A DNA stretch of 64,000 nucleotides from Takakia lepidozioides (GCA_030704615.1 CM060732.1:81406001-81470000), one strand, 5' to 3'; shown: positions 1-36,976, counted from the first letter of the stretch. Translations and numbers: made by a program. The notes: a model not told the origin generated them from the sequence alone.

Positions 1-874
1 ACTATATGGGAAGGGAGTTCTAAGCATAGCGGATAGTTTCACAGCCAAACCTGTGCCCTTGAAGTTTATTCTGTCAGCTTTCTCCAGGCTGTCAACATTG
101 CTGTAAGATTGGAATGCTCACACTGAGTAGAGGAACGGTATAAAATGGATGGACTTGGTCACTTGAAAGGAACTGAGTCATGTAAGGCAAACTAGCCCCC
201 ACAGGAATACCTTGGTGATTATGCACATCAAATTGAGGCTAGAATCTTGAAGACAAATGAACATCAAATTTACAGGTAAGTTTCACCACTGGAGTATGCC
301 TTATGTGATGGTTGTGGCTCTCATACTCCTTCATGTCTCACTTCTTTCCCCCCCTTCTCTTCTACTTGATACAAGATGGGGGGTCTATTGCCACTTGTCA
401 TAATTACTTCTGTCCCATTCAAAGGTTTTGACTGGAAGGGACATTTAAGCTGTCAATGTGGAACCCCTAGCCCCTGGATGAGGCACTTCTACTTTCAGTG
501 CATAATGTCAAGTAGTTGTGCTGTTCTACTTCGTCCCTTGGGTCCTTCGGGTCCCCTATGGACTACATACAGTTTCTTTTTGTGGAGCATATCCAGCAAA
601 CTTAATAAGTTTCTGTTTCTGTATCTTTCTCCACTGAACCAGCTAACATCAGATTCCCAATCCTCCAAAAATACCCTTCTAGTTGGCAGAGCCAATCACT
701 ACCTCTCACCTAAGCTTCCATGGGGCCCATTCTGGTCAACGTCGATATCTGATCTTTGTAGTCACCTTGTGGCACACCAACACAAAATAGCTCTATAGTA
801 TATACATGTACAGATTTGCATCCATCCTCTTCGTGTTGCAAATCAATGACCCCTCCATATAATGAATTTACTCA

Positions 875-3800
875 TCACTGCCACGGCATCCTATTTAGAT
901 GTTGTCCCTGTGCTGGCCCACTTCCCTTTCTGCTACTTTTTTCCCTGTTCTTCCTATTATGATTAGGGTCATTCAAATTTGTACTGGGAGGTGGACATGA
1001 AACTGGGTTTCTTTCCCTCTCTATCAGTGCAAGAGGTGGCTGTCTGCAGTACTCACTGGAACTTGCATTGGAAGGGGGTTTTTGATGGGCACTGCCACTA
1101 CGTATTTTTGGGACGGGACACTTTTCTTTATTTTGGTGAGCCCCATGATGCCTCCCATAGTCTTTTGCATGACTTTTCAAGGTCCCAGGAGACTGCTCAC
1201 GACTTGGGGACCTCCTAAGGAATTTCCCATGGGTCGAGGGACTGTCAATGGACGTACTTGGCGAGTGGTCATTCAGCTGCAGCCTGTCCCTTCTTTTAGA
1301 TACATCAGGACCATGAAAGAGCTCAGCATTGCCAAAATCAGAGTCGGCACTGTGAGATTGGTGGACCATTTGACCAGGGAGGGCGACCCCAAAGGAGCCA
1401 TCACAAACGCAAGGGGATCTGCTTCTTGAGATACCATTGCTGCTCCTCAAAACATGAGACCGCTCAACAGAGGTCTCTCTTTTCACATGGTCCTGTCTCC
1501 CAATATGGGAAATACCAGGGGGCTTACTTCGAACAGAACTCTGGTGTGAGGAGGTGTTTCGTCGCTGAGTATAGGGGCCATTAGGGGACTTCCTATGTTG
1601 AGAATTGTCCCTCTCTTTCAAGGGGCAAATATTGGACTTCTGGGGATGGTTGACCCTTGGGAGAGTGTAGGTGCTCTCAGCAGACCCACACTTCCCTTTG
1701 TGGCCCACATCATCTTTGGATGGGTACTTGCTCTGTAACAAAATGTCTCTTTCTTGGGAAGGACCTTCAGTGGAGAGCAAGCAACAGGCTGCTTCCCTCT
1801 CTAAGCTTTGATGGAATCGGCCATCTGTTGGTGTGGGGTATCGTTTGTCAGATAGTGCAGTGCCATTCTGCCTGACTTTTGCACTCCAATGTTCTGTGAT
1901 CTGTGTGAAATTTCTTTCTTCTTGTGAGGAGCTCTGAGTATCCTCACTCAGCTCTGTAAGTGGTGATGGGCTCCTGTACAATTTGTCATCCTCCTGTGCT
2001 AGTAAGTTTTTTGCTGTTTGAGAAGTGTTTTGTTTAATTTTCTCAAATTGGACAAGCAAGCTTTCGTATCGGGCTTGTAAACTTTCAAGACACTCATCCT
2101 GGGGGAAACTGTCACTTGGTTCACTGGTTGCAGTTTTAGGGGACTCCATCTCTGGTTCAGATGATTGCAAGCTCATAGACAACACGCTAACCTCTAGTCC
2201 TTCAGAAGGAAAGCTATCGTGGGTTACATCCCTCATCTCTGCATGAAAGCTCTCCAGAGGCTTCGTCCATGGCAACTTCCTTTCATGAGTGCAGGAGCTA
2301 CCAATCAACTGCGTTTCGGCTTCCTGAGTTTGCAGCATCCTGAGTACCTCAGGTGGAGGGTAGTGTTTCTCAGACATCGGAGCATTGCGTTGCTCAAATT
2401 CCACTAATTGTGCATGGAAGATATAGGGTGATGTTCTCTGTCGGAGACGATCCTTTTTATCAGCTGTAAGGCTCCCAGGAACTTTTCTGTGGGAGTGTCC
2501 TGTCTTAGATAACTCTCGATCCTCTGCTGGGGGATAGTATTTTGGTGGACTCGTTTTGTTAATATGTCGTACCTGGGCATGGTGGCTTTCAGAGGACTTG
2601 CCTTTGCCTTTGTGCTTCTGTGGGGTTGCATGTATATCACCATCCCGTGACTGTTGTCCAGGAAATTGGAGTTTCCTCACCAGAGCAGAGGCCCTTGAAG
2701 ACTTGCTATGTGGGTACTTCTTACTTCCTTCCACACAGGAGCTCTGAGTAGACAGGCTTTCTTCACTTTGGGATAGTGGTTTCCCACACAAGTGGCTCAC
2801 CCTTGGGGAGGGGTATTGTTTCCCTGATGGAGAGGTGACATGGTGCTCCACCACATGTCTCTGGCAGTGGGAATTTCTAACGAGCTGACTCCAATGGATG
2901 CCATCATCTTCATGCTTTCTGCCACCTTCCTCTCTTTGGAATTGCAACGCCTCAAACAAAGGGTTTTCCCTTGGAGTGGGATAGTGTATCTCGGATGGAG
3001 GAGTGACATGGTGCTCAACTGAACCTCTCTGGTAATAGGAGATTCTAAGTAGTTGACTCCACTGCATGCCATCAGGTCCGTACATTTCAGTGCCCTCCGG
3101 AGTGAGGGAGTTGTTCATTAATGATGTAATGGCATGTGAATCCACATGCCCTGCTTCGGAATGATAGTGCCTACAGAGATCAATCTGGAACCCTTGGGGA
3201 CAGTTGCTACTATGAGAGGAGGTGGGTCCAATGGTTATATGAGGTAAGTCGGTGGGAGGTTCATTTCGTAGGGGTGTGAGACCTTGATAGATGTCCCCCT
3301 TTCTCTGCTTGTGGAAGTTACCATGGGCTCTATGTCGTTTTCCTTCATTGTGTTGGTTGTGCCAAGAGCTTCTACAGTGTTCACTCCCTTCACGGTCCAA
3401 ATCTCTCCTTGTCTCAAGAAGAGAACCCTCGTCCATACTGCTACACTTCTCTGTATCTCCCTGCCTGGTAGGATTCTCAGATGTTGTACTTCTGTGATGT
3501 GTTTCATTGCCCATATCGCAAAGGGAGCTTTCAGAGGTTGTAGGGAAGCCCGAATCATCCCATGTTGCTGAACAGGAAGTTTCATTTGAATTGACCTCTG
3601 GAGTTCCAGGCTGTGAAATTCCAACCCCTCCCCAGGGGTGACATCTCACAGAAATTGTGTCCAGTTCACACTGAGATGTACTTTCATCCCCCTCTCTATC
3701 ACCCTGGCAGTCTTGAGAGAGAATGCTCTCTGGGTAGTGCAAATCATTACATGTATTTTCATGGTTGTTCTCACTTCCCTCTTGGTCCTGGTAGCTTGCA

Positions 3801-6800
3801 GAGGGTTGGCTCTGTAGCTGCTGTGAATCAACTCTTTGAGAGGGAAAGCTCTGGTGTAGATGGATCTGCAGTGTCTTGTAATGGGAGGCTGCAGGGGGCT
3901 TCCTCCTTCGGATTGCAGGCTGAATCAATTCTCAACAGAAGGAACATGTTTTAGCATTGATGAAATGATTGGAAGATTTGATGAGATCTACATGTGTACT
4001 GTACTTTTGATGCCTTACCATTGCATGAATTTCTTTGAATCATGTTTAGTTGTCAGTGTCAGTATGAAACTCCCATAGCTTTCCACTGCTAATGACTGCC
4101 CATCAGAGATTAAGCTCGTACCAAGAGTACTGCCAGTGACTCCAATCCACTGCAACTGCACTGTTACAACTCCAACCGGCAGTCAAACTGCAATTTGAAC
4201 TAGCAGGGAGGAGGGAGAAAAGAAAGGGAGTACCTTGGGTGGAAAAGCATGGGAGGCACGTTGTTTCGACCAAGTGTTGAACAAGTGTAACACTTGAGAG
4301 GTACTTGTAGGTGGGAATATTTGTGCCAGCTCCATGGCCCTCTCACTGGTGATTGTGATGTGGGGTGGCACGTGCTTGAAGTGACGCCTGTAGTAGGCAC
4401 GGGCTGTCCATGGCACCCAGCTTCTCAGGCGTTGGCCCAAGTCCTATGAATTTTGTCAGAGCTCAGGTCAGTGGAAATCATAATGTTCCTACGGGCATGG
4501 TCTAAATTAGATACTTAGCAGCCCCTGTCCTATTCCCCAAATCTCTGCAATGTAGTTCACAATGAATGTGTCTTTCTTGGTACCATTACAGTTCCTTTGG
4601 TGTCCTACTCAGTAATTCACGAGGACTATTGGGGTGGATAATGAGAATGGCATGTACCTCAATGATGGGCATGGCCTCTATCTTGAGTCGGACATACTGG
4701 GCCCTCATCTCTGTATCCAAGCCAAATTTATCCAATTTTGAACTGCTACCAAACTGCATCTCCACTAGTGTTTGGCTGCTTTTGAGCTCTTTCTGCTTCC
4801 TCTCTGTTGCCTGTAGGGCAAGTATGTTTTGAGTCTCCCACACTAAAGTGGGTGGTGAGTCTGTCTGTAATAGACGAATAGTTGCACCTAAGTAGGCAAG
4901 CTAGGGTTTTTCGAACTGTTTCCTTACTCGGGTTAGTGCATAAGCACAGTGATTCAAGACAAGCAAATCCAACCCACAGTGATTGAGTGGAAACTCTGAG
5001 ATGGACAGTGGTTGATGTTTTAGAAGGCATACAGAAGAATCATGTAACCTTGATTTGAATCTAGTATTATTGCCACTGATATCCTTTGAGTATAATGCCT
5101 TAAGAAAGGCTTACCGAGTTCTTTAAACGACCGATAGAATATGGCAATGTGCTCTGAAATTGTGCAGCGTGGGCACCCTGTATGTGAATGTAAGGGGTGA
5201 CATTCTCACCCAGTGCTTGTGTGGCAGAGAATAAAAACTCTTTGGCCAGTACTGGCAAACTGCATCCAATCAGAATTAGAAATGATGTTACTTGTGTAAC
5301 TGAAGGAATTCAGCTCCTATGGACTTCTGTTCGTGCAGCAGCCTCATTTGTTTGGTGTTATACCCTAGTTTTACACTTCATACTTGAACTCCATAACCTG
5401 ATGGGGGTCAGAGCAATTGGTGGCAATTGCTGGTAGAAGCAAGAAGACCAAACTAACAATTGAACTGTGTCCGCAGAAGGGGCAAGGGACAGGGAACACT
5501 ACTGAACCAAATACAAAACTTAGTGAAGGGAAATTACTAATTTGTGAAGCTAGAGTGTAATAGAATGTAAGTTCAATAGATAGTTACACCAGTAGCCAAT
5601 GAAAATAACTTGCTCAACATGCTGCTGCTGCTTCTTTCATAAACCCACACCTTCGAAGCTTACTCTACCACTAAGGTTGTCAATAATCAACTGGTGGCAA
5701 AATGTGGAGTACACAACTAGCCTATGAAATCCTTGATTGATTGCTTTCAGCTACTGCGAAGTGACAAACCCAATTTGTGCCAGAGCAAGTGGTGAAACTG
5801 TTAGAACTCTGTCTTAGAATTCCCAAATTCTTGAGGGTTGCATTCAAGCGCGCACTGAAACCCCGTCACAAGCCTTCTTCAAGGTCATTGTGGACCTAAG
5901 CACTTCTATTTCATATGCTAGAACTAAATGCAGTGGCGGAAGATTGTTTGTAATGAAATGGGACAGACAATCTACGGAGTAGAGGTTTGTCATTAAGGTT
6001 TGGAGATTATACCTGTCATCATGGGAATATGGGTGAAATTTGTATACCATTTGCTGTAATACATTGAAGCGTTGGTAGGTGGACCACATCCGCTTTGTGT
6101 AGCTGAAAGTCCTAGTGCTTGGCAATCCCTCTATCACCTGTAGTGCATTGAACTTACATACTTGAGCTCAGAAATATGGCATACCCCATTGTTGTGCTTT
6201 ACAGTGATTTCTTTCATGTTGCACACTGCTGTTAAGTAAACATTATTTGGACCTCGAGTCTAAGTCAGTAGATACCCCAACACTTTTGTGGCATGTTACA
6301 TCATGTGAGTGAGTTTGTGGAACCAAATTGCTCTCAAATGCATGTTGTTTTTTGCTTTACTTTGCATCTCATCCTTCGATCTTTTGTTGCAATTTGGTTA
6401 AGAGCTTTCAAACACCTTCATCAACACCAGGGATGCAGGAAAGTGTGACTGACCTTCAATAATATGTCATGATGGTTCAATATATGGTGAGCAATGGCTT
6501 CGTCAAACTCATCATATTTTAATTCCTTCAGTGTGGACTGTCCGGGTAATGCTTTTGAATCTTTGATTTGACATGGGATTGAAAGAGGAGGATTGTCCAT
6601 CGCTTCCCTAAGCAGCTCAAGACGAGACTTGGGGTCTCTCAAACTCCTCACATCACTACATTGTGCTTGTGCAACAACCGCCCTCATCATGTGCAAAACC
6701 GTGCGAATAAGAGCATGTCGTGCACAATATGTAGCCGCCGACATGTATCCTGGAAACAGCTACATTACAAGCAATTTCTATGGGCTCAGAAGCTGAGATT

Positions 6801-8488
6801 GGATTGTCATATGTCATGTGTCACGGCTGAATACAAATTACTAGATCAGAGGTGATAGTATGGTACAATTGTAGGCCATGAAATGAGAAAGAATACTGAT
6901 GAGGAGGAAATCTATCGTGTGCAAAAGTGCCAATGCTGTATCTGATCAGGTGTACACATTTCTTCTTCTCGGAATGCAAGTAAATATTGGATCTCATAAC
7001 GCTTGAAAAATCCACCTTATGTAAATTTTGGCGATTAGTGGGCCAGTGACTCAACACAGTCACAAATATCCGTGCAGGCAAACTCTCCAAGATCGGCTCA
7101 TCGTCTCCAATTCCCTCCAGACAGGGATTAAGCTCCTGTGATCACGATCAAACCTCAATTTTGTAACCTCGCCTAAAACTGAAGACAAGATGTTGAGATG
7201 CACCTAAATAAGGTACATGCCACTAGACTGCAGGTAGTAGGCTTTGTAGTTGTAAAAACCGTGATTGATTCGCTCATCCTTCTATGCTAGTAGTTTGTCT
7301 TTCTGAAACCCATGAGCCTCTTCTGTTGTATAATATTGTTATATACAAGTTCGCACTGTGCATCCTAACAAAGATTAGGATTGCACGTACCACCAACATG
7401 GCTGGTCGCATATGATAGTGGGTAGCCAAAGAGGTGACGGTGTCACCATCAACCAGAGCATGCTTCGTCGTGACATCTCGTAGCTGACACTTTCTCTTCA
7501 CATTGCACCATGGGCAAAACTGATCACCGAAAGCGCTGATGCATCCGTTACACACAGCCGTTCTAAAGAAAGCCATGTGATGGCACTCGATAAAAGCCAC
7601 CTCCAATCGCCGCCCCTCTCCGAGATCCAACCCATCTTCTTGAACTGTATATAATTGTTGCATCAAGTTCTGAGGATCTTTCTTATCAGCTATGTAACTA
7701 TACGTTTGGTCCCAGTTGTGATCTTTTCCTGCCCACTTTGCTACACTGATGCAGGACAGAGGGCTCATGTCACACAACAACTCCATCATCACCTCACATA
7801 CACTTCCTGGCTTGTCATTGTGGGCACGGGCGTCGATACCCAACTTGAAATGTGCAACCTTCTCTATCTTGGTATTTGTCCGATTCTCATGTATGAGAAT
7901 CAAGCAGACCAGCCAAGCTTGAATGCAATCTACACGCACACCAAAAGTATCCCCGTTAATGGTAACCCACCCAAAACCCATGCGTCTTCCCTCTGCTGCC
8001 CACTCATCTAGTTTTCGAGCAATTGAGACAGGACATGCCCCCTTCAAAACACCGAAATCATCGATTTTTCGAATGACCCCCAACATCTCTTGTGAGATGG
8101 TGGCTGAGCTGAAGATTGTTGCAAGTTGCTCAAAACTCAAAGAGTGGCTGTTTGGACCTGTCTTCTTCAAATTTCTAACTCTCTTTTGTTGCTTGATTTT
8201 AATCCTCTTCTTTGGTTTAATTCTCCTTGGTCGAACTTGGATGGCCGAAGGTTTACTAGATGGATCGTTGACAGCGGTGACAGGTGCCACCATCGGTGGG
8301 CGCTTGCCAGTAATTACCACAATCAAGCGTGGGCGCATGCAAGTTATCACTGTCTCTCTTGACTCCTTGCAAATTTCTGTGTTGCATGAAGTCCCGGGAG
8401 TATATCGAGCTTCTAAGTGCTCCACTGAGTCGGTATGTGAGGCAGCAGTGAGAATGGTTTCCAATTCCAATAGACCACTGAATGGCTC
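875..8488 (-). CDS. RAG1/Transib-like transposase-fold protein with LysM-like insertion and long disordered C-terminal tail (putative domesticated transposase; 5' end uncertain)
   Basis: Exons 8488-7391, 7135-7016, 6759-6454, 6137-6013, 5259-5115, 4810-4658, 4443-4234 and 3919-875 have GT-AG junctions, consistent phases and no internal stop (1733 codons). Motifs in order: KLGIDAR, ECHHMAFF, FCPWC, CARHALIR, MWSTY, VTPYIHIQGAH, SIGRLKNS|ATERKQK. The first 7 exons are well supported by motif continuity. The join to 3919-875 is less certain. The first in-frame ATG is at 8338; otherwise there is an unidentified upstream exon. Confidence 0.72.
2800..3075. repeat. Degenerate coding tandem duplication, 168-bp (56-aa) period
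   Basis: 2800-2907 resembles 2968-3075. The protein copies are QWSQLLRISYYQRGSVEHHVTPPSEIHYPTPR and HWSQLVRNSHCQRHVVEHHVTSPSGKQYPSPR. Confidence 0.85.
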
Positions 8489-9746
8489 CTGAACAGCAGA
8501 GGCCAGAGCAATTTTGGGTACAGATCAGGCTGCAGACTTCCTACAACTGGGTTTCTAACCAATTGCTAGTGCTAATGACTTATTCACACACAATCTACTC
8601 TAATATGTACCCTTTACCAAAACTGGAGTATCAAAAAGTTCCTACTCGATGAAATCTAAGCTGCTTAGAAATTATCAACTGCAGCATATAAAGAGATCAG
8701 CAAGTTTTGATTTAAAGACGCTTGAACTTCAGAAAGAGAGCATGGGCTTGCAATGCCAAGACTTAAAAATGTTATATCCATCAAGTTTTCTTGTTAGTTG
8801 AAAGTTCAAAATTCTTTACCGACACTGCAATCTCATCACCTAAAATAACTCCCTGCAACCGCTGGAAATGTTAGTAGAAGAGACTTTATATTGCTGTATC
8901 TAAGAGGATAACTATGCACAGGGACAAAAGCAGTCCTATATGCTGCAAAGAAACTGTACAAAATTCCAAGGTGGTTTAAGGTGTAAACGGAAATCTATTG
9001 CAACTGTACAAAAGCACTTAAAGGAACAGCACCATCTCTTTTGAGAATGCCCTTAGACACACTTTCCCCTGCAAACTAACAGACATATGGAGCTCAGACG
9101 CGTTACATTTCCTAGTTTTTGCTCCATTGTCCCACATGGCTATGTCAGAGCCTAAACAGTCTTTTCTGCTCACCTGGCAATACAATACATATACCACTAA
9201 CTTGCAAAGAGTTTGGACTATCTGCATTATCAGGTTTTCCATAGTTACAATATTGCAATCTCATCTTTTGCTCAGTTATCAGTATTTTACCTTCACCAGA
9301 TCAGGTGAAAACACAGGTACAAACACAGCACAATTTTGCTGTAATTGAGTTGGGGAACACGCGATAGCTTGACAAATGAACTAACAGAAGAGTTGCATAT
9401 ATGGGTTTTAGTCTCTCTATGGACAACATAAAAGTTTTTCTTTTCTTAAATCAAGACTAAACGCCACTCAGATTGCTATGTACCAGTATGACAAATTCCA
9501 GCCCAGTTTACAAACCCTACAAGCTCCCAAAGGCTTTGTATCAGGGACCAGTCATTGGATCCATCATCTCTTTTCCCCTCCCTCGACAGAAATCAGAAAG
9601 CCAGACAGAATCAACGAGTCGCAGGGTTCAACCAGTATGCTGTCACAGAATACTATTGTATGCAGACAAACAGAATAATTTTCAGATCCAATATTTTCAC
9701 AAACTTGGTCAATTGAGGAGATAGGGGAAGGGAGATAAAGGGAGAA

Positions 9747-12700
9747 TTAATCCACTTGATTCAAATTTTCAGAGGACAATGAACGTGCATTGCAAGTCCT
9801 GTGTGCCTCCTGAGGGAGTCGCAGCTCCTCATAGTCCCCAACAACGACCTGCTTCCATCAAGATACACAGACAAGGCCCCTTCTTAGCCCACTCCAGAAC
9901 AGGATTTACATTTCTAAATCCTTCCCGCCCATATCCCAAACCCCAGACTTCCATAACCAGCACAGCTTAGGACACAACTCAACTTTCTGTCAAATCAGGC
10001 TACGGCAAACAGTCTTATGAGTACATCTATCACATCATGTCCTGTGCCAAGTGGAACAGACCTTCATATGCGAAAGTGTGGGATGTTGTCAACAGGCCCT
10101 GACTTCTGTGTTCAAGGAGAGGAACTTGTGCTTCCACCATCCCATACAAGGACCCTTGTACCATGTAATGCCCACATCTCCAACTCATTTTTCTAATCTT
10201 TGAGTGTGGTTAGCTTAGTTCAGCCCTTTAGGCAATGGACAATCTAAGACTCTTAAGCGCTTACACAGTTTTCATTGTCCGTCCAAGTTGAACCTGACGC
10301 ACGCTGGAACAAAGAAATGCTACACCGCATACACTTAGAGCAAATGTACAGTTGCCAGATGTTTGACCACCAATCACAAATTAAAAGAACTGCAGGAAAG
10401 CAGTTGAAACAGAGAGGGACTTCAGGATCTATGTTTCTGGGGGACAAAAACATTGTTGAACAGATCTGAGCTTCCCATCACTCTGAGGTGAATCTACTGG
10501 CTGTTATTGAACAATCATGCTGTTCTTTGGATTGTCATGTTGCTAATGTCTGTCAACCTGGAAGGTTCCAAAAGGCTGATTAGACATTGAGGTCATGTGC
10601 ATCAGCTGCTGATGAGGCACATAAAGATGAAAATTACTCCTCCATCATGCTGTAATACTGCTATCCTACTTTTTGACAGACTCTCCACTCCAACCATTGC
10701 CAACTGTTACCACTAGAGACTTCGGAACCCATTGGTATCCAATTTGGTGAGGCCACTGCCCATAGTCCCCTGCTAGATGGATCGGGTAAGTCTACCTCCA
10801 ATATAGGCTTACGCAGCCCCAGGACCACAAACAGTGATGCCAAAGTGCCCTAAACATCTCTGGGGTTACCTGTCTGGTGGCTATAATTTCATTCCCCTTC
10901 TCTTAGGGGAGCTTTGGGGAGTAATCCAAGAATCGAGAAGAGAAAGAAAGATACATATAATGTGGCACTCTACTAAATTCACAATTGAGAGGTAACCAAA
11001 GATAAGATGACACAGCCACATCCAAGGTAAAGAAAGATTACAAAGATAAGACAAAATCAACAGAACAAAACATCAACGCAAGTCCCCGGAAGAAGATACA
11101 GTTAAAAAGGACAAATGAAACAGATCGGTCCCTCATAACTAAGAGAAATGAAATGGTACTTCATAACGTCTGCGGGAAGCTCAAAGAGTTTATGGGAAGA
11201 AGCAAAGACCATATATGACATCCACAGGGGGGCCCAAGGGTCCATGGACCAAGTAGAATGACAAGGGACCTAAATCAACGTACTCCAAATGACGCCCAAG
11301 ACAAACTGCCTGATACAGAGAGAAAGAAGAAGACGAGATCACGGGAGGCCCGAGGAGACCATCGAAGTAGAACAGCAGAGACAGAACATCAATTTAAAAC
11401 CCCAACATTCAGGCACTCCTGACCACTGAGAAGACTAGGGACCAAGACTTATACCCAGCTCAAGAGAAGAAGTGGCAGAGGAAGAAGAAAAGAAGAAAAG
11501 AAGAAAAGAGATTTATTATGTCCAGAAGGGCCACTGAGGACCCCTCGGACACAAGTAGAGAGAGACATGCCTGATATTGGGAGCTCTGGAAACTGTAGGC
11601 AACTTCTAACTGTTTGGTTTCCCCCGGGCAAGGGTCACAGAAGCCCATTAGCCCCGCCTTCTTCACTCCTGCATACAGCTGCACCCAGTGCCAACGAGCT
11701 ATTAACAAAAAAAATGGGCTGGGTGAACTTGGATACAAATTTCAACCTAGAAACTTTGTTTGCTAGAAAGCTACTATAATTACAGCTTAGGTCACAGGAA
11801 ATATTGATGATGGAGACATAAGGGTATCTACTGTCAGCCTGTTGTCATGACAGTGGAGACAAACCTGGAGTTGGCCATGGTCATTAACCAAAAACTGCAA
11901 AGGGATAGCCACATCTAAGTAGGGTGGAGGGAGGTCTGAGTCATCCTCCTCTGGTCGTGCCCCATCCTCCTCACTATTAGAGGTCCTGCCCCCAAGGTGG
12001 GATTTTATGGCTCCATACAAAGCCTCCAGAATAACCAATCCATCTCTCTCAGCTTGTACCCTTTTCTTCTGCTCTGCAACATTCCGCAGAAGCATTTGTG
12101 CCTTCTCAGATGTGGCCCTTGCCTCAAGTACCTGGGTCCCAGCTAGCCAAGATCATCAGCAGAACATTGTTCCACTAGAAATCGCTAGAGGATCGTTCAC
12201 ATCCTTTAGTAAAAGGGCTAGATTGCTGCTTATTCACAACGACATCGACGATCAGAGACTATTCAATAGTCTTACCATAGTATCATGGGTGCCTAAAATT
12301 CCATGACCAAGAGAGGAGGAACATGACTGATCCATCTCAATCTTAACTCTACCTGGTGTGGTCAGAACGAGAGGAAGAAGAACAAATATTTATTGCCATG
12401 GGAGGTCAGAAGGCCCATGGGACAATGTGAAAGTAGAGTAACTGAAGGACACATTAATAACCACATACATTGCATAATGCAATCCCAAATCTGGTTTGGA
12501 TGGAGGAGGAAGCTGAGGAGGAAACTGAGGAAGAAAAAGAGGAAAACCCCAAACGTCACTCAGAACGAAGTGCCTATGAAAGAGAGCAGCTGAGACTATG
12601 AAGAAAAAAGTTCAAAGAGAAGACACATGCACAGGAGGCCCAGACAGGCCACAGAAAACATCCACAGGAAGCCAAGAGAATTGAAAGAGACCTGAGTGAC

Positions 12701-15700
12701 AGTCAGACGCCGTTGCTCAAGACTCTTTAGCCGCTTTCTCCGAAGATAGTATGGCTTTAAAACAAATATCTGCATAGAAACACCCAATGACAAAAGAAGC
12801 TCATATCGAAGGTCAATGCATAAGTCACAACTGCAGGGAGCCATCCCCAACAAGGGGAAGTTGGTAATGTACGCATCAGATGTTGCTTGCCATAGCCTTA
12901 TGGCCCAACACAAGAGGCGCAGAGCAGCAGGACAGTCTCATTACAAGTAGTGGTCCTTACCACAATTATATACAAAACTAGTTTTGGCTTTCAGGATTTC
13001 TTACAGACAGCAATGAACTCTAGCATCTAATGGTGCGTAACATTAACACAATAATTCAGACCCAGTGGCTCTCTGGTCCTAGAGGCTGAAGGCTTCTGCC
13101 ACTCTCCAAAGAGGGGTAATTACTAATCAATGTACGTGGGGCAGGCAAAAACGATAAAATCTACTGTGTTTCTGTTTTGTGAGAACCAACTCAAAAGGTT
13201 CCCACAGCCTTCTTGAGGGATGTGGACAGGAGCAATCTGATTGCATCAACCAGTTATCAAGAGGGAAAAAGTAAGAAAGAAAGAAATCCACTGGAGAGAG
13301 AATGAGGGAGAGTAGAGAGAGAGAGAGCTGACCTTGATCAAGGCATATAAGGACGATGGCAAAACTAAAGCTCCAGTAGCTATCACTGGATTCAGTGTTG
13401 AACAAAGAAAAATCTGGGAAAGAAAACATGCAATGAAGTCAAAAAAATCAAATAGTTGGGGAAAAACAAAACACTCACACCCAGCACATCAAAACAGCCC
13501 AGTGCCATCTTTTAACATTGGGGATCCGCGATTCCCAACACACTTGCCAGCTTGTAAATCATCCATACAACATTTCTATGACATCCCAAGGCTTCTACTC
13601 CACCCTGTAGGTCTTGCTGCTTGCAAGGTTGCATCATACTTTTTAACAAGCTTTCCAGACCTTAATTTTGAGACAATCAGAAGTCTAGAGGATGCAGACA
13701 AGGTAATGACTGCAGAACGCAAATAAATTGTGATGTCCACGAGGTGCTAGTGCAGCAGTTTTAGTAAAGATGTGCATCACTTGTAGTGCATTAAAGGTCA
13801 CTTACAGTCTGCATCTCTGTAAATCTTCACAATACATATCTGTACATGTATGTAACAGTGACAGACAGAGGTAGAATCCTACAGGTAAAACAAACTTTTG
13901 GCCTCCTCGAGTAAACCGAACTCTCCATAAGACACCCTGCATCAATTGCAGACAGTTGATAACAAACAGTACTTTTGTTCAGAAAAAGCCTAATCTTCCT
14001 TGAAATTTGCTTCCAATTTCCTAAAATAAGTTCTAGTCAAGGAGTCATTTCAAAAAACCCATCCAAGTCAAGTACAAAGGAGTCCAAAGAAGAATCCAAT
14101 ACAAAGGAAGAAACGAACTACGTATTGACAGTGCTGATGGACCATAGGCTATGACACATCCATTCGAGGCTACCTGCCACACCTAGTAGTGGGGAACTTG
14201 GACAAAATCTGCTGTAGGGTTTTGCCTGCAACTTACAACGAACTAATTACATGGTTGATTGAGTGAGAGAGAGAGAGGAAAGGAGACATGCTGATTGCCC
14301 AGTGGGGCACCAACCACCATTTTCGAACAAGAGTTCACTAATACACTGGCCGGGATTCAGCAGAAACTGTGCTGTTGATGCCATGAAAGAATTCCACAAA
14401 TAGCAATAGAATCTGTAAGAAAGAGAATCCCAGAATTGTAGGGGCAGTGAGTACCTGGAGGCCGAGAACACAAAACATGGCAGCTGAGCTGTGCTCTGAC
14501 ACTCTCCTCTCTCCTCCTATCTCAACCTCTACTCCTGTGCTGTGTAGCGAACATGAAGGGAATTAGGATAGTTTTCTACTGCACAGCTGTGTAAGAAAAT
14601 TGTGCATTGGAAAGTGATCCAAAATCAAAGTCGTTTCACCAAGGATACCAATATCTGTCAAAGCAGAAAATTTATGCCAGCAAAGGGTGAGACACTTTCC
14701 TATGTTCATCTTAAGTGATTGAGATGGGCCACATGTGCAGCCCAGCCCAGCCCACTGAAAAGTTATGTCGGGATTTTTAGAAGAAGAAAAGCATTGCGTT
14801 AAAGTTGACAAGGAATTCTTGTACCCTTCCCAAGTTGCCCCTTTTGCTGTGGATCATCCACTTGTTTGGTTTTGTTACATATTGACAAGCGTAAGTTAAG
14901 AGGTGGATGGACCTGCCAAGCTTGGCAGAAACACGGCCTTGTGACTTGGATGAAAAATGGCGAATGTACTGTCCAGACAGCCCAAAGGTTGTTGGCCCCA
15001 CCTTCAACATTCCAACACAAGTCCTTCGTCAGCTCCTTCAAGGGATGAGATACTCACATTTGCAGAACGAGATCTTGCTTTTGGGGTCTGTCCTCCCAGG
15101 TTCCCTCTCAGTGAGAAGGCAGACTCGACCCCGCGCACTGATGGAGGAGAAAATCAAGCTCCAATTGACAGTGGACAGGCACATGACGGTAAGAGAGAGG
15201 GCACTCCAGGGGACGATGGAGGGAGGAGGACAAAAGACACTGACCTTCAACTCCCCAGAGCCAGCATTTTTCTTCCCATGCCGCTGCCAACCCACTGAAA
15301 TCCCTGTATCCGTGCCTGTGATCAACTGTATCTGTTCAAACCCCAGATTTCACCAAAGTATCAATGTTGCCACCAGCACACCCTGATGTCTAAAATATAC
15401 AAATCCATGTTCTTTAAGGAAGAAGGCTCAACAACAGCAGTGAATAAGCTTCATGCTATCACAGAAGGAGAGAGAAGAGAGGGATCAGGAGTACATTGCC
15501 AGTGGTCTCTTCAGATAGTTGGCGCGACCAAGTGTTTGCCAAGGTGATTGACCCGTCCCTTAATGACACTGTCAAGTCCAGGGTTCCTGTTGAATGTGAT
15601 GATAACTGCCTGTCAACCGGATGACCAGTAGTTCTCTGCCATGTCAGCACCTTCCTAGAACTTGCAATCACTTCATGTAATTCTTTTCTCTCTCACTTCC

Positions 15701-18700
15701 ATGTCAAGCATTAACAGACGGAATCATGTGCACGGAATGAAGCCCCCCACTCTGGACACACATCACTGGACTTATATTGTTAACTCCCATAGATACTACC
15801 AAGGGACTTTAGTTTCCAAAACCCTAGCTTCCCTAGCAGTTTCATCCAGATGAAGCTACTTTCAAACTCTGCCTGTACCTTTTCTCTTGGGAACTCTTGT
15901 CACAACTCCAACTATCACTCTTCTGTTGAAAAGGAGAAATAGAGCACACCTGGAGGTCTGAATACTCAGAATGGAGCGAAGCCCAACCATACCCAGAACC
16001 TCCAGAGATGAAAGTGGTGACAATTGGCGCCGCAAAACTACTGTCACTGAGCCCCCGCCCAAGCCCCGCCGCAATGCCATGTTGCCACCCAGCACAACTG
16101 TGTCCCTCTTTGACAGCTGGACTTGTACTTGCGTTGACATTGCCATGCTGTACGCACAACCCTCCCCAGTGCACCCATGAGAGAAAAAGAAGACAGAAAT
16201 TTATCAAGTTGGCGGGAATCCCAGGGGCCTGAAGGGACACAAGTAGAACAATGCAGCAGAGTCACACAGGCACAGAGAGGAAGATTTCCAAGATAACAAG
16301 GAGACAAAACAATAGAGTAAGAATGAACTGTAATGTTGTAGTTGAAGTAACCTACATATTGCCAGTCAGCTAACGTGACAATAAACAGACCCATCCTAAA
16401 TGTTTCATTTGGAATCCTTGGGAGAGGGAACACATCCACAAACCACTTCTTTACAGATAGATAACACAGAGTTAAGACTGGTGTAAGAACTGATATTATC
16501 TATAAGGTTACCTTCGGATGCTCTGATTGCCAAACCGCATAGGTAACTTGAAACCCGCAGACCTCAATTGTCCCAATTGACCCCTTGCCTCGTCTCTGGG
16601 GTGGGAAACCCAAGGTCTATGATTTTTCACAAGGGGAATCCCAACCCACCTCAGATATTTGAGAAATCATGTTCTGTTTATATATGTTTCTGCCTGTCCA
16701 TTGTCCCTCTCTTCTCTCCCCTATACTCACATCATTTTTCCAGCATTTATGGTCTACACTACCAATCACAGAATGTATCTGGTTTTGCATTTCCAGCCAT
16801 CAATTCATGAATATGCAAATCAACTCGCACTATGGAGCTATGCAGCAGAAGTCCAAAACATGCTAGTAAAATCAGCAAGCTATTTCCCTCCTTTAGTTTG
16901 TCCAACCCATGTCCAACACAGCTCTGCCACAGACTGCAGCATGCACCAACAAAGCCACTAGCAGAGTTCTTCTGACAAAAGAATGCAGCACTAACCACTC
17001 ACCCCACTCTAATTATTGCTTCTCTCTGCCCTCTGCCAAGGGAAAGAGAGAGAGAGAGAGAGAGAGGCGCTATTAGCTGTCCTTCATTCAAAGGTCTGAC
17101 TTTTCCTTGCATTCAGCACCACCAGTCAGACCTTGTTTGAAGTCCACTGTGCTCTTAGGAGTTGCAGCGAAAAGAGAGGACTGTGACACAAGCAAGACAG
17201 ATGTATTACCTCCCAACAGTTTTTAGGGTACACTATCTTCTAAATCATGATAAAACAAGATTTTAGCCCCTATGGTAACCAAGCCAGAAACAATGCTTTG
17301 GTAGGAGAAGAGAAGAAAACGAAGGAACTTTACGTATCCACGGGACGCTCAAAGAAAGGATCCATGGAGGCTCAAGGGCCCATGGGACAAAGTAGCACGA
17401 AGAGAGAAACAGAGCCCCAAGGGTCAAAAATTTAAGTATCACTATGGGAGAGCAGAAACTAAAGAACGAGAAGAGACTGTACTCATAAGACTTTGTTTGC
17501 CGTAACCATTGCACGAAGACCAGAGAGAATGTCCTCATTGCTGTAGCCTTGTTGCCATAGACCTCACGCCCAGTATGGGCGGAACAAGAGGGAACGGGAC
17601 ACTACCTTTGTGAGGTGCTCACTCCAGTAGTGGCACTTACCTTGACATAAACAATTTGTTGAAGGAGAAAGAGAGAAGAGAGAGAGAGAGTACCCATTCA
17701 TCCTTGGGCCCGTATCAAATGACTGGAGAAACTGGGCTAATGATAAATTTACAAGGAGAGACCCCTGGTGGTGCACATGTGCTGCCAGACGCCTGTCTTC
17801 CTGCCGCTGCTGCAAACGCTCAAATTCTGCCTTTACTTCTTCTCTTGTTTTCAGCTTGGGCCCTAGCTCTAAACCTGATGTCAATCCCTGCATACCATAG
17901 ATATCATAGATCTGTCGCTTGCGTTCACTGCTCAAGATCTCGTACGCCTCCCGGATCCTCTGGAAATTTGCTGTTGCAATGTCTTGCATCTGTCAGACAA
18001 ACACAATGCATGCAAGATTTAATTCTCTCATACTAGCCCGGAAACAGCATCAGGAGTGTACAATTTCCTGATTTATCGAGTTTGAATCAAAGTGGTGCAC
18101 CATCCATAGAATGTACTCGTGCCATTCCCTGCAAATGTTGGCTCGCCACAGCCTTATGGCCATTGACCCCACAGGAAACTAACCCTCCCAAAGACTTTTG
18201 TGGGGCTCACACCCACCAGGGTTTAGCTTATCCCGCAGCTCAGCTGCAGGTATAAACTTATGTTCCCGCAACTGCCGTTAAGGGGCTCACAGAGGCACTT
18301 GTCTGCATGCAAACTCAACAGCCCAATTGGAGAGTTTTTTATTTTAGTTTTATAGCCCTGCGTTTGCACCATCCATTGAGAGACCTACAGAGCAACAGTA
18401 AGACAACCATGCACTGATGACACGAAGGTTTCTAGATGGTAACATGCTACTTTCGTATACATCACCCACATTGCAATGAGGCAACATGCTTTAAATGGTT
18501 GCATTGTCCAAATATCCCGAAAAATGACTTCTCTTCCTGTGCTAACAAACCCCCTATGACAAATTGCTTCTAGAACCACAAAAGGGGTTCCCTGGAGTAA
18601 AACCTTTCAGCTTAGCCTCTCAATGGTAACCCAGTTTCTATGAACAGTATACCATCTCCAAGATCTGCTGACTAATGACAAAACCCTGTCTAAAAGTCGA

Positions 18701-19841
18701 TAGCTCCTACTGCCTATCTCAAAAGCTTGTACAATTTTCCCAAACGGCCAGGTAGGGTTTGCAAGAGCGTGGGGACACCAAATACCATAAACCTTCTATT
18801 GCTCCCCAACAGGAAATAACAGTACAGAGAATCTCAGAGTCTACTCCTTCTGGTGATGGAAAAAGTCACTAATAATATGAACAAGGAAAGTAGACAAAAG
18901 ACCAGGGGACGGCGCAAATTAAGCCACTCAAACCCTTGTAAATGACCTAGCAAAGTGAAGACTCAGGCAGACAAATGGCAGAAAACATAATCAAGCGGTA
19001 GTTTGTGGATGTAATGTAGGCTAGACATGCAAAGAAGGGTGAGTAGTGTATGCCAGTAGTCTTCTGACCCCAAACCCAAAACAGGGAATTTGTGAAGCAA
19101 TGATTCATGAGGGAATTTCCATATCCACATGGGAAGACAATATGCACTAACAAGAGAAGACAATACAGTAGGAACCAGAGTGGACTTCAGGGGATAATTC
19201 CAATGTATGAGTAAGGCTCAAAAGAATACAATCTGATGAGAGAGGAGCGATGGATAGGGACGTCGTCACTGCAAGGTCAGAGTCCCAGGTTGAAAGGCAT
19301 CCGCCAGTCACCGGTGCTGTTTTAAACGACTAGGGTGCATGAAACTCAAACACCAATGGGACTCCCACACAACACCTTACACAGGAACTTGGGTGTTGCT
19401 GCAGGCTTTTGTTTCCATCGATGACATGATTTCTGCACTGAGCTGGAGCTGGTTGTGGAGTTGTAAACAGCAAGCTTATGAAAATTTGCGCCAATTCTCC
19501 CTTCGCGCTCGTGCAGCCAACGACAATCGGATTGCCGGGAGGGGTGGTGATTTGAGGGCATCGACAGAAGGCACGATGGTCCAACACGGCCGCTGTAGCA
19601 ATCTACCTTGACAGAGGTGTGACAGATACGGCTGCGTTCCCACATAGATAAGAGAGAAAAAAGAGTGGCAGAAAAAGTAGGTAGAAGGAAGAACCTGAGG
19701 AGATTGGTGCTTGTCGGGGTGATATATTTGAGCCCATTGCCGGTAGGCCTTCTTGATATCCTCGTCTGAAGCTTCGGGCGAGAGATGCAGAAGGGCATAC
19801 AGCTCTCTAGCCGGCTGCTCGTCTCTTTCAAACTCCTCCAT
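9747..19841 (-). CDS. OWL1: J-domain protein of the DNAJC11/OWL1 (chaperone protein dnaJ 13) family, 13 exons, 568 aa
   Basis: Exons 19841-19695, 17989-17694, 16147-15950, 15609-15495, 15331-15245, 15001-14913, 14539-14455, 13936-13883, 13413-13333, 12769-12692, 12131-11865, 11678-11571, 9848-9747. J-domain [25 protein letters not shown] (HPD motif) and C-terminal [29 protein letters not shown] are colinear with Arabidopsis OWL1 as I remember it. All phases are consistent. Confidence 0.93.
17045..17066. repeat. (GA)n microsatellite (others at ~13313-13327, ~17677-17690, ~62672-62689; (TA)n at 37856-37872; (TTTTG)n at ~63806-63830)
   Basis: Directly visible in the sequence. Confidence 0.9.
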
Positions 19842-22766
19842 CACCCCCGCCGCTGTGTCTCACTCACCGCACTCCCTTGCCCTCACGCATCATGACCACA
19901 TTCTAAAAATCTCTGCTTCCTCAAAACCCAATTGCTAAATTTTCCACAAAAATTCTCTTCTTGACCTCTACATTTCTCCATCTCGTCAGAAAGTCATGTG
20001 AAGCCACCGAAACTGGGCTGCCTCTTGCTGCTCTGTTTTGAAGCATTCACCCGAGCAACGAGCAACATTGAGTGGAAAGGACACGCACCGACGCCCATTT
20101 GCCGCATGGTTCCGAGGACGGTCACACCCTTTCCTACTCTGCATGACCCAAACAAAAACTTTTGGTCGTGCTACTTGCCAAGTGTCTCCACCATTACTGC
20201 AGCCTTTGGTTCTGAATTCTGCGCTCTGCCTGTTCCCGGCTATGAGAGCAAGTGCCCCACCTCCACGCCCCACATACTTCCTTTCGGGGCCACTAAATAC
20301 ACTTACAGCAGAGCCCAAAATGTGGTGGTGGTCGTTCATTGGACTCAATGGAAAACTCAATGTCCATGTGGCAATCCAGTCTATACCAATACCAATAACA
20401 ATAGGACAAGAGTTAAAGATGCTAAGGCCTTGGCACTGACAGAGATGAATCGTGGAAACAGGCTGATGCCCTGCCCAATTGCAGAGGGATAAGTTAGTAG
20501 ACTATTTTCTGGAATGTTCTTTCTCTTGCCAGGAACAGCCATAATGAGCAGAATGGATGTGAACCTGGAAGTCTCTGAAGAAGAGGAAGATGGTCAATGA
20601 TTGCATGCAGGTTTGAGAACTTCAAGAATGCATCAGAGATGATGGCTGTGAATGTGAATGCGAAGGCAGGGGAGGCGGGCTATGATCCTTTCTTTCACTG
20701 ATGAACACGCTCTCCGACCTATTGCCAGTCTGAAAAGACTGAGAAGGAGGCGGCGGAAGGCCATAATCGTAACAGCATTTCAAATCTGCAAACTTGGAAC
20801 GGTAGTTCTGGTGAGAGGTGGTGAGGTTAGATAAGTAATGATGGAAGCAATCCGATTTCATTGTTCCTGAATGGCAGAGGTGACCTTTTATTCATAAATT
20901 TCATCAGATGTAGGCAGGCATGAAGCAGTCCTAATCATTCGTGCACATGCCGCAGGCTTTATCAATTGTGGGTCCTTCAGTATGGATTATGCACTCTTCA
21001 GTATACTAAATGCACTCTGCAAGTGGAGGGGTTCCCAAGGCTGATTAATTCCATGCAAAGACCACCATTGATTGGCAAGCCCTGCAAACACTGATGGAAC
21101 TCCATTATGCGTGATATCACTGACTGAAATTTCATGTAGTCTCAAACCGCAAACTAAGATTGGACAGAGACTCAAAAGACAGATTATTTGGAGCAGCTCC
21201 AATTTCTCACTTCAGATGAGTCTTGTACACCATTTTGTCAAACACTTACCTTTGTCCTTTGCTAGGAAATGATGAAGCAAATGGTACAGTCATTAAGGAA
21301 TGTTGACAAGAACCAAGTGACCAAGCTTGCACATGGCAAAGCATAGTGGACAAAATTTTATGTAAAAGCATCAGCTCAATGACCCGAATTGAAATGATTA
21401 CTCTTGAGGGTCACAGCACAGGCTGCCATGTCAGATCCAGTAAGGAAATTCCCAGCAGCCTTATCTTCCTCTCCCTTCCTCTGATAAAATGGCTTACCCA
21501 GGTCCAGTTGGTCCAACAAAAGGGTTTTGACCGAAAATTCAAAAACTCTTCACCGAAAGCCTTCGCCAGTTACAGGTGGGAAAGTTCAATGGATCATTAA
21601 CTGCATCTGAGTCTCTGCCCATGTCTCTCATCTCTTCAGAATGCCTGTTTGAGATTGTTTGCTTCTCTCCCCATGCACTGCTGCAAAACAGCAGCGAACT
21701 GAACTCTTCACATCAGAACGGTGAACAAGGCGAAAAAATCAAAAACTGAATCTCACATGGCATAGAATCCAAACACACCCTCTTGAGCTGCCATAACTTC
21801 CATACTATACGTGGTAGCTTATCTCCCTCTTCTCTTACTGTCTTAGAATGTGAAAGGAAGATAACTGACTAACCACTAATCAACCAGTCCATCGTCTGGA
21901 CAGTATGGTGCATGCATCCAGAAACATTCACCCAATTTGATCACTTACCATACAGCTGGAGCGCACTTGGTGTCTGCCACTGCAAGGAGTCCTCTGCGGT
22001 TCCCAAACTGACCTTTGTCACTTCCAAGTATCGAGGCCAGCAGGCTCTAGTAGCTCACTCAAAACTTCCAGACAATCTCCGTAAGCCGGGGGGGCTTAAA
22101 TTATTTGAACATAAGTAGTTGCCCTCCAATTCTAATTCCACTGGATAAGACTTGGTCTCTCAAGAAACTAAAGAACCACTAAATGGCTGTTGGCATCACC
22201 AAAGACATAGAGAACCTCCAGCACCTGTGACCACCAAACCCACTGGTGCTGCCACTGTTGTTTGAGGCAGGACACTCGCACCAGAAACTCTGCTGAATTC
22301 AATCCACCGAAAGAAAATATAGCCTTTTAATCTGTCCTCAGCAGTGATAACTTGTGGTTTTCCTGTCTGAAACAAACATCAACGCCCTGTTCTATGTCTT
22401 GATCAACTAATGAGGTCCACTATCAAATGGCAATGCCTGTCACTGGTGAAGTAAAAACCAAGATTCGCCAGTAAAACAATTTGAGAAACTGTCATTACCC
22501 CTTGATGTGCACACTGGTAGCCCTGTAATAATGTCAACCGGATCTCTCCAGTTCCTCCAAGAGGTCAATGGTACAATTGTCAAGCAAGAGTGGCTGTTGT
22601 CTTTGCGGTTGCAGTCGAGACTGGGAAAGACTCTGCTCTCTGCTCATGCCTGGATAACAACTTATATGTTGTGGAGAGTGCAAATTCACGAGTGAATCTC
22701 TGGCAAAATCATTGCACCTGTTACTCCACTTCAAGAAAGTGATGGACAATTCGTATCTCCTCTTTG

Positions 22767-25700
22767 TTAGCTCAGAGAAGGTCCAGACGTTCCAGAAGAC
22801 TCGGCCACACATTCCAATCGACCAGACACTGAGGAAAGATCATTTTTTGGATCAGGTTCTTCTTGGCCAAGGGCACGATTCAAACGCCGCAACCATATAT
22901 CATAATCAACTGGATATGGTGTCCCACAGAGTGTGTCGACATAGTCAGCAAATGCTTTCAAGATGGCAGAAACCTCCCCTAGCTGCTGCTGGATTGCTCT
23001 TCGGGCCCACACTCGATCCCTCCATCGCAATGCAGCTTCCATGCTATTGAATTCTGGAGTAGAGCCACCACACATGAAGTAGAGAAGATAGACGAGGCTC
23101 TCTGCATCTGAAGCTGGACAGAGCTTCCCCTCTTGGAGGGCTAATGTGGAAGAGAACTTGGGAGCAACAGCAGGACTATCTCTCTCCTCCAGTACAGCAC
23201 GTCCCCAGTCCGTCAACACATACATACAGATGTTATCAGCCCCTCGAACTCGAATGACATGCTCCGGGGTTATGTCCCCATGTTGGATCCCGGCTGACAC
23301 TGCACTTCGTAGGGCTGCCAAACAATCATGGCAACAGCGGAGAGCCTCTTCTGTGGACATCCAGCCTTCCCTCTCCATTGCTGATTCAACAGTCTCCCCT
23401 ACAGGAGAGGTGACCAGGACCGGTGTCCCACACCAGGGGTGGTCGCAACGCCCAGTAGGGCTCTGCTTTGTGCAGGGTCCTGGGTGCATGAGTCTTCCTG
23501 AAGCTATGATCTGTGGCAAAAACTTGCTGGAGATACCCCGTTGCTTCATGATATTCAGAACACGTGTCTGTCTCTGGACCTGGAAGATACAATACATACA
23601 TGAGTAGTAAATATTTGAGAGATTCACAAAGCAGAATTTCAATCCTCCTTGCAACATACCTTGTCTGCAAACACCTATCATATCACATACTTCCACTTTT
23701 CCTTCAGAAATCTGGCGGAAAAGGCCATGACCTCCTGTTCTGAGTCTTCAGTAATGCCCCACCTTATCATTGACCCATCAAAAAGGAGGGAAAGGAGAGT
23801 GGGACAAAATAAAAAGAGAGATCCACCAACCTGGTACCACATGCTCATATCCTCCCATGAGGGCTCCAGCTGTGAGGGGTGCGCTCCAACATACACAGTA
23901 AGAAGTTTCCCCATTTCATCGAGAGATGCAGCACTATACACTGATCGCCATCTGCTGCCCACTTGCTCATGAATCTGAAAACCCCGCTGCCAATGTGCAT
24001 CTTCCAACCATAAAATTGTGCCAGGTTCAAGCTTCATGATGTAATCAGGGGTACCTTGACCACTCTCAAGCTTTGTCTCCTACCATAGCACCATAAAAAA
24101 GGGAACACGTCAATCTCTGTGGCTCCCAATCCATCACAATCAATCCCAAAAACACCCACGCATGACACTCCTTTACCACCAAATATCGCCAGAAAATTTG
24201 GACCCAGTTTCCAAATCAAGGTAATTAATACGTGAGCACACCACATACAGAGAAACGCTGGAAGAGAGAGATACTCATTGGCCATTCCCTGTGGAGTTTG
24301 ACTACTACATATGGCTATTGCCAGTTGCCACCTACATGTAGAGAAACTGCAGAGAAGGTAGACATTGGCTAACCTCCTCTTCTTCCTCAATCTCATTGGT
24401 CTTGCGACGATTGCTGGGGCGATGGGGATGGCTATGGTAGGACAACATATTGCCATTCCCTTGCATTCGAAGATTTTTATGTTCCGTGCGCCTTTGTTGC
24501 AACCTTACATTGTGCTCTGCTGCCATCTTCACAAGTGGTCTCTTAGGTGGGCCCTGGCATTGCTCAATTGAATGAAAGATGGCCAAAAGTAGCTGCAGTG
24601 CACCTATATCCCCCCAGTTTGCACTGCCAAATTTATTCCACACTTGATCAACGTGAGAAACAGCAATTTCCGCATGCTCCCGAATCCACTGTGCAGCACT
24701 GGAGTATACCTCATCTGTGTTGGTCTCCAATTTACTTATGTCCCCTTTTAGCCTGACCACACCCCCCTGCTGTGAGTCCACAAACAATATGTATGTTGTA
24801 TCTGTATTCTGGTGTATCACACGATCACCGTCAGCCAACTGCCGCGATGAAAGCATCTGTAGACTATGGAAAAGAGCAGACCCTACAATTGCTAGGGCAG
24901 GGACAGTTCCCCCGCCTTGAGAAAGGGCCCCTCCCACATCATCCCTAACTTCCACGATTGCGGTAATATGTTCCCAGAGCACATGGGCTATGCCTCGACC
25001 ATCCTTAGCAATAAGGGCAGTGCCAAACTGTGTGCCCGCACTCCCCCTTGAGCTTGTTTCTTCCTGCTGTAGGTAACAACGTCGGGCATTTCAGTAACTA
25101 ATTATTTGACAACCCAACTTTCAGTATGTGGCCCACATTTGCAATACAGTAGCTGAACAACCTGATGGCATTGGCAAGTGAGGTACCATCAAAAAAACCT
25201 GACAAAGACCTTAACATGTGGGAAGAAAGAAGGGTATTCTCAAGTTTATTTCTGCAAAACATGTTTGATAAAGCTTCAAACTTTCCTACATGGTTAGACG
25301 TTTGGAAACCTCTGCAATTGCCCCACATTTTAACCAGGCCAGCCTGTTCATTTGAAAAATAAGTGCTTGCAATCACTATCTAGATCTTGGGTCAAGAAAT
25401 TCGTCACATTATATGCACAAAGATCAACAGAAGGAGTAGACCTGTAGCAGTAGCAACAAGGCAGTCAACACAGACAGTTTCTTTCAAGCACTCAGTTAGC
25501 ATACCAAATTGGATTTTGAAGCAGAACCCCATGGGGTCATTACAAAAAAGGGCATGGACTGAGGTTCGTCAGAGGCGGCCCAAAAGGTCTCCCACAGGCG
25601 TTCAGTTCCGACGTGTACAAAATCCTCAATCGCCAGATACCTGTCTGTTTCTGCTAAGCAAATTCAAAGAAATTGTGAACAAAAATTAGAAAGTAGAGGA

Positions 25701-36300: not shown

Positions 36301-36976
36301 GTTCTGCCAACATCAACCTCTTTGCTTCAGGCCTACTACTACAATACTAGTGGGGTCTACACGACAGATTACCCGGAAACTCCACCTGTGCCGTATGACT
36401 ACACGGGGATCGGCCCTTTTGTGTTTCCAGATGCAAGTCAATCCACAAAAGTCATCGTCGTCGAATATGGCTCCGTCGTGCAAATGGTATTGCAAGATAC
36501 AAACATAATTGGTGTTGAAAACCACCCCATTCATCTGCATGGTTATAGTTTTTTTGTTGTAGGGGTGGGGTTTGGGAACTACAATGCCTCAACTGCAACA
36601 TTGAACTTGGTGGATCCACCGAAGCAAAACACCATTGCACTTCCAAAAGCAGGCTGGGTGGTCATCAGGTTCACTGCAGACAACCCAGGTATGGAGCCAT
36701 TTGCATTTTTAGAGAATCTCGCATATGATTCATCTACTATGACTTGCAGTTTCTACTAGTTATGCTTATCAATGAGGAACAATTCTTGAAAGTGCTATCT
36801 TGTTCAGCAGAGACTAACACATGTACGCTTGCATATTTTCCGCAGGTGTCTGGTTTTTGCACTGTCATTTGGAGATTCATATGAGTTGGGGTATGAAGGT
36901 GGTGTTCATCGTGAAGAATGGTGTGGGTCCAAAACAAACACTTCCTGGTCCGCCTTTGGATTTACCGCAGTGTTAA
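33309..36976 (+). CDS. LAC: Laccase (multicopper oxidase), copy 1, 6 exons
   Basis: Exons 33309-33500, 33713-33864, 34440-34699, 35374-35502, 35693-36688, 36846-36976. Copper motifs [28 protein letters not shown] and the C-terminal DLPQC. The start may instead be a downstream ATG (33330 or 33369). Confidence 0.95.

Follow-up and report, generated by a model that had tools for sequence, protein, structure and literature searches.

A RAG1/Transib-superfamily gene beside OWL1 in mosses that looks like a second, independent domestication with its cutting site disabled

RAG1, the enzyme by which vertebrates shuffle their antibodies, is the textbook example of a transposase domesticated by its host, and to our knowledge the RAG1/Transib superfamily is not counted among the normal transposons of plants. 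The question raised by a 64,000-nucleotide stretch of the Takakia lepidozioides genome (the window) is whether a gene on its minus strand belongs to that superfamily and, if so, whether it is a transposon or a gene of the host. An original prediction, made from the DNA sequence alone, had proposed an intact, domesticated RAG1/Transib-like gene at 4234-8488. The features that bear on the question are collected in Table 1.

Table 1. Features of the RAG1-like gene and its synteny anchor (window coordinates)
Feature	Position	Strand	Description
Exon 1	7391..8488	-	Basic stretch at the N terminus; RAG1/Transib core, pre-RNase H and RNase H half; zinc CxxC; LysM-like insert, first half
Exon 2	7016..7135	-	Second half of LysM-like insert and linker
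Exon 3	6454..6759	-	YCARH motif with the probable counterpart of RAG1 H795 (His 6717-6715); helical zinc-binding domain
Exon 4	6013..6137	-	Zinc-binding domain, helical part
Exon 5	5115..5259	-	Zinc-ligand motif TPYxH-x4-H; the most conserved exon (71-85% identical to orthologues)
Exon 6	4658..4810	-	Helix with third catalytic position; start of C-terminal domain
Exon 7	4234..4443	-	Conserved helical C-terminal region
Probable exon 8 (new to the model)	875..3919	-	1014 codons; tail of polar, low-complexity sequence containing one [YF]xPPEV motif; splice to exon 8 inferred
Candidate upstream ATG exon	9174..9242	-	23 codons; strong phase-0 donor; not conserved in orthologues
First catalytic Asp position	7832..7834	-	RAG1 D600 equivalent by motif and fold position; Asp in 10/10 clade members
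Second catalytic position	7577..7579	-	His in the window and throughout the ten-member clade; mostly Asp in relatives outside it
CPWC zinc-ligand pair	7505..7516	-	RAG1 C727/C730 equivalent
Third catalytic position	4802..4804	-	RAG1 E962 equivalent; E in window, G in L001, Q in L015 and L017, E in L016
LysM-like insert after CxxC	7055..7465	-	Split by intron 1; Pfam LysM in relatives, just under the cut-off
OWL1/DNAJC11-type J-domain gene (synteny anchor)	9747..19844	-	Neighbour, same strand as RAG1-like gene

The seven exons proposed, running from 8488 to 4234, withstood examination. All acceptors are AG and all donors GT, the six introns have phases 0, 0, 0, 2, 0 and 0, and the joined exons amount to 2157 nt (719 codons) with no stop in any of them; the codons originally assigned to the first Asp, the CPWC pair and the Glu were likewise confirmed where Table 1 places them. 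As donors and acceptors fall at the same codons in the contigs L001, L015 and L017, and those of exons 1-6 in L016, the model is not the product of chance. It is incomplete at both its 5' and 3' ends, and the extent given to the gene did not hold, a probable long eighth exon having been missed. Upstream of the acceptor at 8489 there is no in-frame ATG, and a TGA stands at 8526. L001 (7854-8630) and L016 (2-259) share the end of a conserved ORF, situated between OWL1 and exon 1, which is absent from the window, L015 and L017; it may be a further exon upstream or a separate small gene. Two probable RNA runs yielded a few shallow, unspliced contigs and no joints, so that RNA evidence is absent rather than negative; the contigs that begin at 9329 and 9352 probably represent the 3' end of OWL1 mRNA.

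At the other end of the gene the donor of exon 7 is compatible with a phase-0 acceptor at 3921-3920, where the 1014-codon frame begins. The long ORF of L001, L015 and L017 is also opened by a phase-0 acceptor, in two of these three it starts with Pro as it does in the window, and the [YF]xPPEV motif is present in all five long ORFs (window and four orthologues). It is on account of the acceptor in the orthologues and the motif in all five that the long ORF is read as an eighth exon, which probably encodes a tail of ~1,000 disordered residues. The window tail bears hardly any resemblance to the tails of the orthologues. A direct repeat of 148 nt (72% identity, 168 nt apart) lies at 2759-3074, within probable exon 8.

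The relationship to RAG1 is one of fold. None of the exons matched a Pfam family, in a release that may lack new RAG1 models, and sequence searches of solved structures (PDB) with single sequences and four profiles found no RAG1 match. A language-model search (Atlas) related the exon-1 core to RAG1 clusters at 0.97. The predicted structure of exon 1 has a mean pLDDT of 64 (70-90 in the sheet region), and its six best matches among 48,161 chains were RAG1, BbRAGL and HzTransib (VIA; Z 8.0-9.5, rmsd 2.5-3.3), with the next-best chain at Z 4.8; the top 46 Foldseek matches all belonged to the same group. For the window this evidence is exon by exon, and the full-core fold comes from P0008, a natural intronless relative from a marine eukaryote that matches exon 1 with E 3e-11 and exons 3 and 5 weakly. 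The top 43 Foldseek matches to the whole P0008 core were all RAG1, BbRAGL or HzTransib (best E 4e-7), and its alignment covers RAG1 479-1002 with Z 10.8 and rmsd 6.3, for a low-confidence model (pLDDT 56); over the helical zinc-binding part the fold is taken from P0008 only. The superfamily assignment of the original prediction was thus upheld by structure comparison of the exon-1 model and the P0008 core, and on its fold the protein belongs to the RAG1/Transib superfamily, though not as an active element of the Transib or ProtoRAG kind. Because the PDB sequence searches gave no RAG1 match, the numbering of the motifs after RAG1 is taken from the fold, from the end points of the alignments and from the established residue numbers of RAG1 (D600, 708, C727/C730, H795 and E962). 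Word-based homologue searches with the algal protein recovered only itself. Locus scans of viral contigs found nothing, and those of metagenome contigs nothing true; the one match, to exon 5 in L014, was rejected as a short repeat array resembling a CRISPR array.

The catalytic site has fared differently from the fold. Where the last RNase H strand ends, most outside relatives carry E-[CAV]-H-D, whereas the ten members of the clade that includes the window all carry E-C-H-H. In the P0008 model the Asp of this motif sits at the strand-helix junction. By structural-alignment end points RAG1 708 falls on model residue 190 and the clade His is residue 189, a register uncertain by one residue; His189 and Met190 are both non-acidic. 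Three of the five orthologues have G or Q in place of the third-site Glu, which lies across the exon 5-6 junction, whereas outside relatives keep it. With His at the second site in 10/10 members and E/G/Q/E/Q at the third, a complete D-D-E triad is missing. In setting CHHMAF beside the GYDEK motif of RAG1 the original prediction passed over the loss of the Asp (HH in the clade, HD in relatives), and an intact triad was rejected. In RAG1 D708 and E962 are each essential, and losing one abolishes cutting. From HH at the second site and a Glu that drifts among the orthologues, the nuclease is probably dead rather than intact, and we hold with good, if not full, confidence that normal catalysis has been lost. 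The zinc ligands of the RAG1-type helical insertion (C-x2-C and H-x4-H) are conserved in all five orthologues, as CPWC or CLWC and HIQGAH, and so is the exon-3 His. The pattern is that of a protein selected for a zinc-stabilised shape, not for catalysis.

The syntenic orthologues that had been suggested as a check were found. The gene stands directly downstream of OWL1/DNAJC11 in the window, in L001, L015 and L017, and in L018 and L019. In L001 the exons of OWL1/DNAJC11 are followed by the full set of seven exons, with identically placed splice sites (47-85% identity), and these by an ORF of 1188 codons; L015 and L017 repeat this layout, OWL1 included, and L016 holds exons 1-6 and the long ORF on a contig that ends short of OWL1. 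The exon-7 equivalent of L016 (5181-5700) has an in-frame stop, with exons 1-6 intact, and this copy may be truncated or decaying. Phylogenetic analysis united ten sequences in one clade (support 99/99), in which the window branches first, then L001/P0041 and then AT-rich members, an order that would fit Takakia, Sphagnum and other mosses; the Takakia lineage has been dated to about 390 million years (PMC13120521). The dN/dS check also turned out in favour of a maintained gene, with values of about 0.3, indicating purifying selection (0.28-0.32 among the unsaturated pairs of L015, L016 and L017; bootstrap upper bound 0.43). In comparisons with the window synonymous sites are saturated and pN is 0.28-0.34, the lower value being that against L001. 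Four-fold-site divergence between window and L001 is 0.69, higher than the 0.48 of OWL1 (p = 2e-4), and the GC shift of the L001 copy (0.59 vs 0.41) may account for part of the excess. Contamination of the assembly was rejected, since pieces of the locus recur at 99% or more in a plant metagenome and in three further samples that bear the same species label, and the orthologues adjoin OWL1.

The window contains a single copy of the gene, whose neighbours are OWL1 upstream and the low-complexity exon downstream. Elsewhere in the window are two similar laccase-like multicopper oxidase genes, named from their sequence and apparently a local duplication (33764-36759 and 52490-54720), a STIG1-like secreted protein gene (58653-59072; Pfam Stig1, E 6e-18), a spliced protein-kinase-like gene on the minus strand with a weak Pfam kinase match (22767-26108), and ORF fragments at 42400-50100 that are possibly mobile-element debris, one of them NIF/FCP1-phosphatase-like (48475-48984).

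Other plant-like relatives are decayed, with stop codons, frameshifts or broken splice sites. Such intron-containing members of the parent family (L005-L013) come from several plants including Physcomitrium, some have extra introns, and one decayed relative derives from run SRR400524, listed as Physcomitrella patens (PMC5021289). L012 shares the positions of window introns 1-4, lacks intron 5 and still has the second-site Asp and the Glu. As decayed relatives have introns at the same positions, the introns were inherited from the transposon, and the suggestion that they are a sign of domestication had to be abandoned. An insert after the CxxC resembling LysM (PF01476) has a similar history. 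It scores 20.2 bits (E 6e-4) in P0010 and 20.0 bits (E 7e-4) in P0009 against a curated cut-off of 20.9, and the window half (the first half of the intron-split domain), searched alone against Pfam, had no match. The insert is found in algal and plant members alike and so predates domestication. The intronless marine relative P0010 (L003:685-5631) is followed immediately downstream by a C5 cytosine methyltransferase gene in the same orientation.

The lack of evident TIRs noted at the outset was confirmed for the flanks searched. A search of the window from the tail to the OWL1 stop found no CAC-type TIR with a 5-bp target duplication, L001 has one CAC-type repeat pair without a matching target duplication, and no long flanking inverted repeat occurs in window 1-16000; a TIR-bounded element was rejected. 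A linked RAG2-like kelch gene was found neither in L001, L015 and L017 nor in the window, which extends 875 nt past the tail.

The position beside OWL1 in three other plant contigs, the same introns and purifying selection make it highly probable that this is a domesticated host gene; synteny and selection, not the possession of introns, bear out the claim of domestication. That it is instead a transposon copy, ordinary or recently dead, or in Takakia a pseudogene without host function, is very improbable and has already largely been refuted by synteny and selection. In favour of this there is no spliced RNA and no certain start, mosses hold many related transposon-like copies, and exon 7 of L016 contains a stop; against it the gene lies beside OWL1 in four genomes with saturated synonymous sites, has 719 and 1014 open codons, is under purifying selection and bears a catalytic substitution common to the whole clade. 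The locus looks like a second, independent domestication of RAG1's transposon family, with the cutting site disabled.

What the host gene does is best explained, with a probability of roughly 0.55, by a nuclease-dead, probably dimeric scaffold associated with DNA or chromatin, whose long tail would recruit host partners. An intron-containing transposase of the RAG1/Transib superfamily would have settled downstream of OWL1 in an early moss ancestor. The second catalytic Asp has been lost and the Glu drifts freely, with the zinc ligands retained, and the protein would no longer cut DNA. Its zinc-stabilised core, probably a dimer as in RAG1 and Transib, could have become the scaffold, and the added tail of ~1,000 disordered residues with its short conserved motif may recruit host partners in the manner of ALP1. 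Counted against this reading are the want of RNA joints, of clear expression and of a certain start codon, the absence from the window of an N-terminal motif common to the other orthologues, the dissimilar window tail and the four-fold excess.

Two further roles for a domesticated protein must be weighed. It is rather unlikely that the gene restrains its own parent family as a nuclease-dead protein, binding the cognate transposon ends or poisoning transposase dimers. Mosses do carry decayed copies of the parent family, and the core that would serve for dimerising and gripping DNA has been kept with catalysis lost, but the gene is under selection in lineages where the relatives observed have already decayed, and simple poisoning needs no tail of 1,000 residues. 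Less likely still is an altered or residual nuclease employed in DNA repair or recombination, with the first Asp, the Asp of a GxD motif and the invariant His forming a changed metal site. In its favour, the first Asp is invariant in ten members and the His invariant rather than random there, Glu persists in the window and L016, and the register at the second site is uncertain by one residue; however, neither His189 nor Met190 is acidic, G or Q replaces Glu in three of five orthologues otherwise under selection, and RAG1 itself needs both of its corresponding acidic residues.

The gene can be set against known systems. With the RAG1 core of mouse and zebrafish and the BbRAG1L of ProtoRAG the moss gene has in common the pre-RNase H and RNase H fold and the order of motifs (Asp strand, strand-helix second site, CxxC, His, TPYxH-x4-H, Glu helix), but the likeness is below sequence detection, the second Asp is replaced, the Glu is variable, a LysM-like insert and a long disordered tail are present, and no RING or nonamer-binding region and no adjacent RAG2-like partner were seen. 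The HzTransib transposase has the same fold (Z 8.0-8.9) and a single-gene layout without RAG2L, whereas the moss gene has a fixed position, at least six introns, a degenerate triad and the LysM-like insert, with no TIR or TSD found. Sea-urchin domesticated RAGL genes are also host-fixed members of the RAG1 superfamily outside jawed vertebrates (PMC9885083), but belong to the true animal RAG1L/RAG2L lineage and are far nearer RAG1 in sequence.

Within plants, domesticated MULE- and Harbinger-derived transposases and Transib-like sequences are known. ALP1 of Arabidopsis, a domesticated PIF/Harbinger nuclease, is also a host gene from a DDE transposase with substituted catalytic residues, and as a non-catalytic subunit of a chromatin complex it is a precedent for triad loss in plant domestication (PMC4671723); it is of another superfamily, and its Polycomb role is experimental whereas the role of the moss gene is inferred. 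MUSTANG and FAR1/FHY3, domesticated MULE transposases, are likewise ancient conserved plant genes from DNA transposases (PMC4948706), but are of Mutator origin and form angiosperm multigene families. Transib-like matches have been named from angiosperm assemblies in a paper whose main text has no moss family or plant domestication (PMC9435367), and when 1,007 plant genomes were surveyed with a screen that covered Transib domains, the active clusters reported all came from seven other superfamilies (PMC12973397). Literature searches, with most subscription journals and Repbase outside their scope, turned up no account of this gene, of a RAG1-like family in mosses, of a LysM-bearing branch or of a domestication of the superfamily in plants.

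The locus reveals a deeply diverged, intron-containing and LysM-bearing branch of the superfamily that profile searches have missed, and an ancient domestication with a different outcome, in which catalysis was lost, the zinc core kept and a long tail added. It offers a natural comparison for the taming of RAG-like proteins and, in mosses, a single target for knock-out. More speculatively, and with the odds against it, one member of a LysM-bearing RAG1/Transib branch of algae and mosses may have been domesticated ~390 million years ago to act on DNA ends or chromatin in a programmed way; if true, this would be a plant counterpart to the domestication that produced RAG1.
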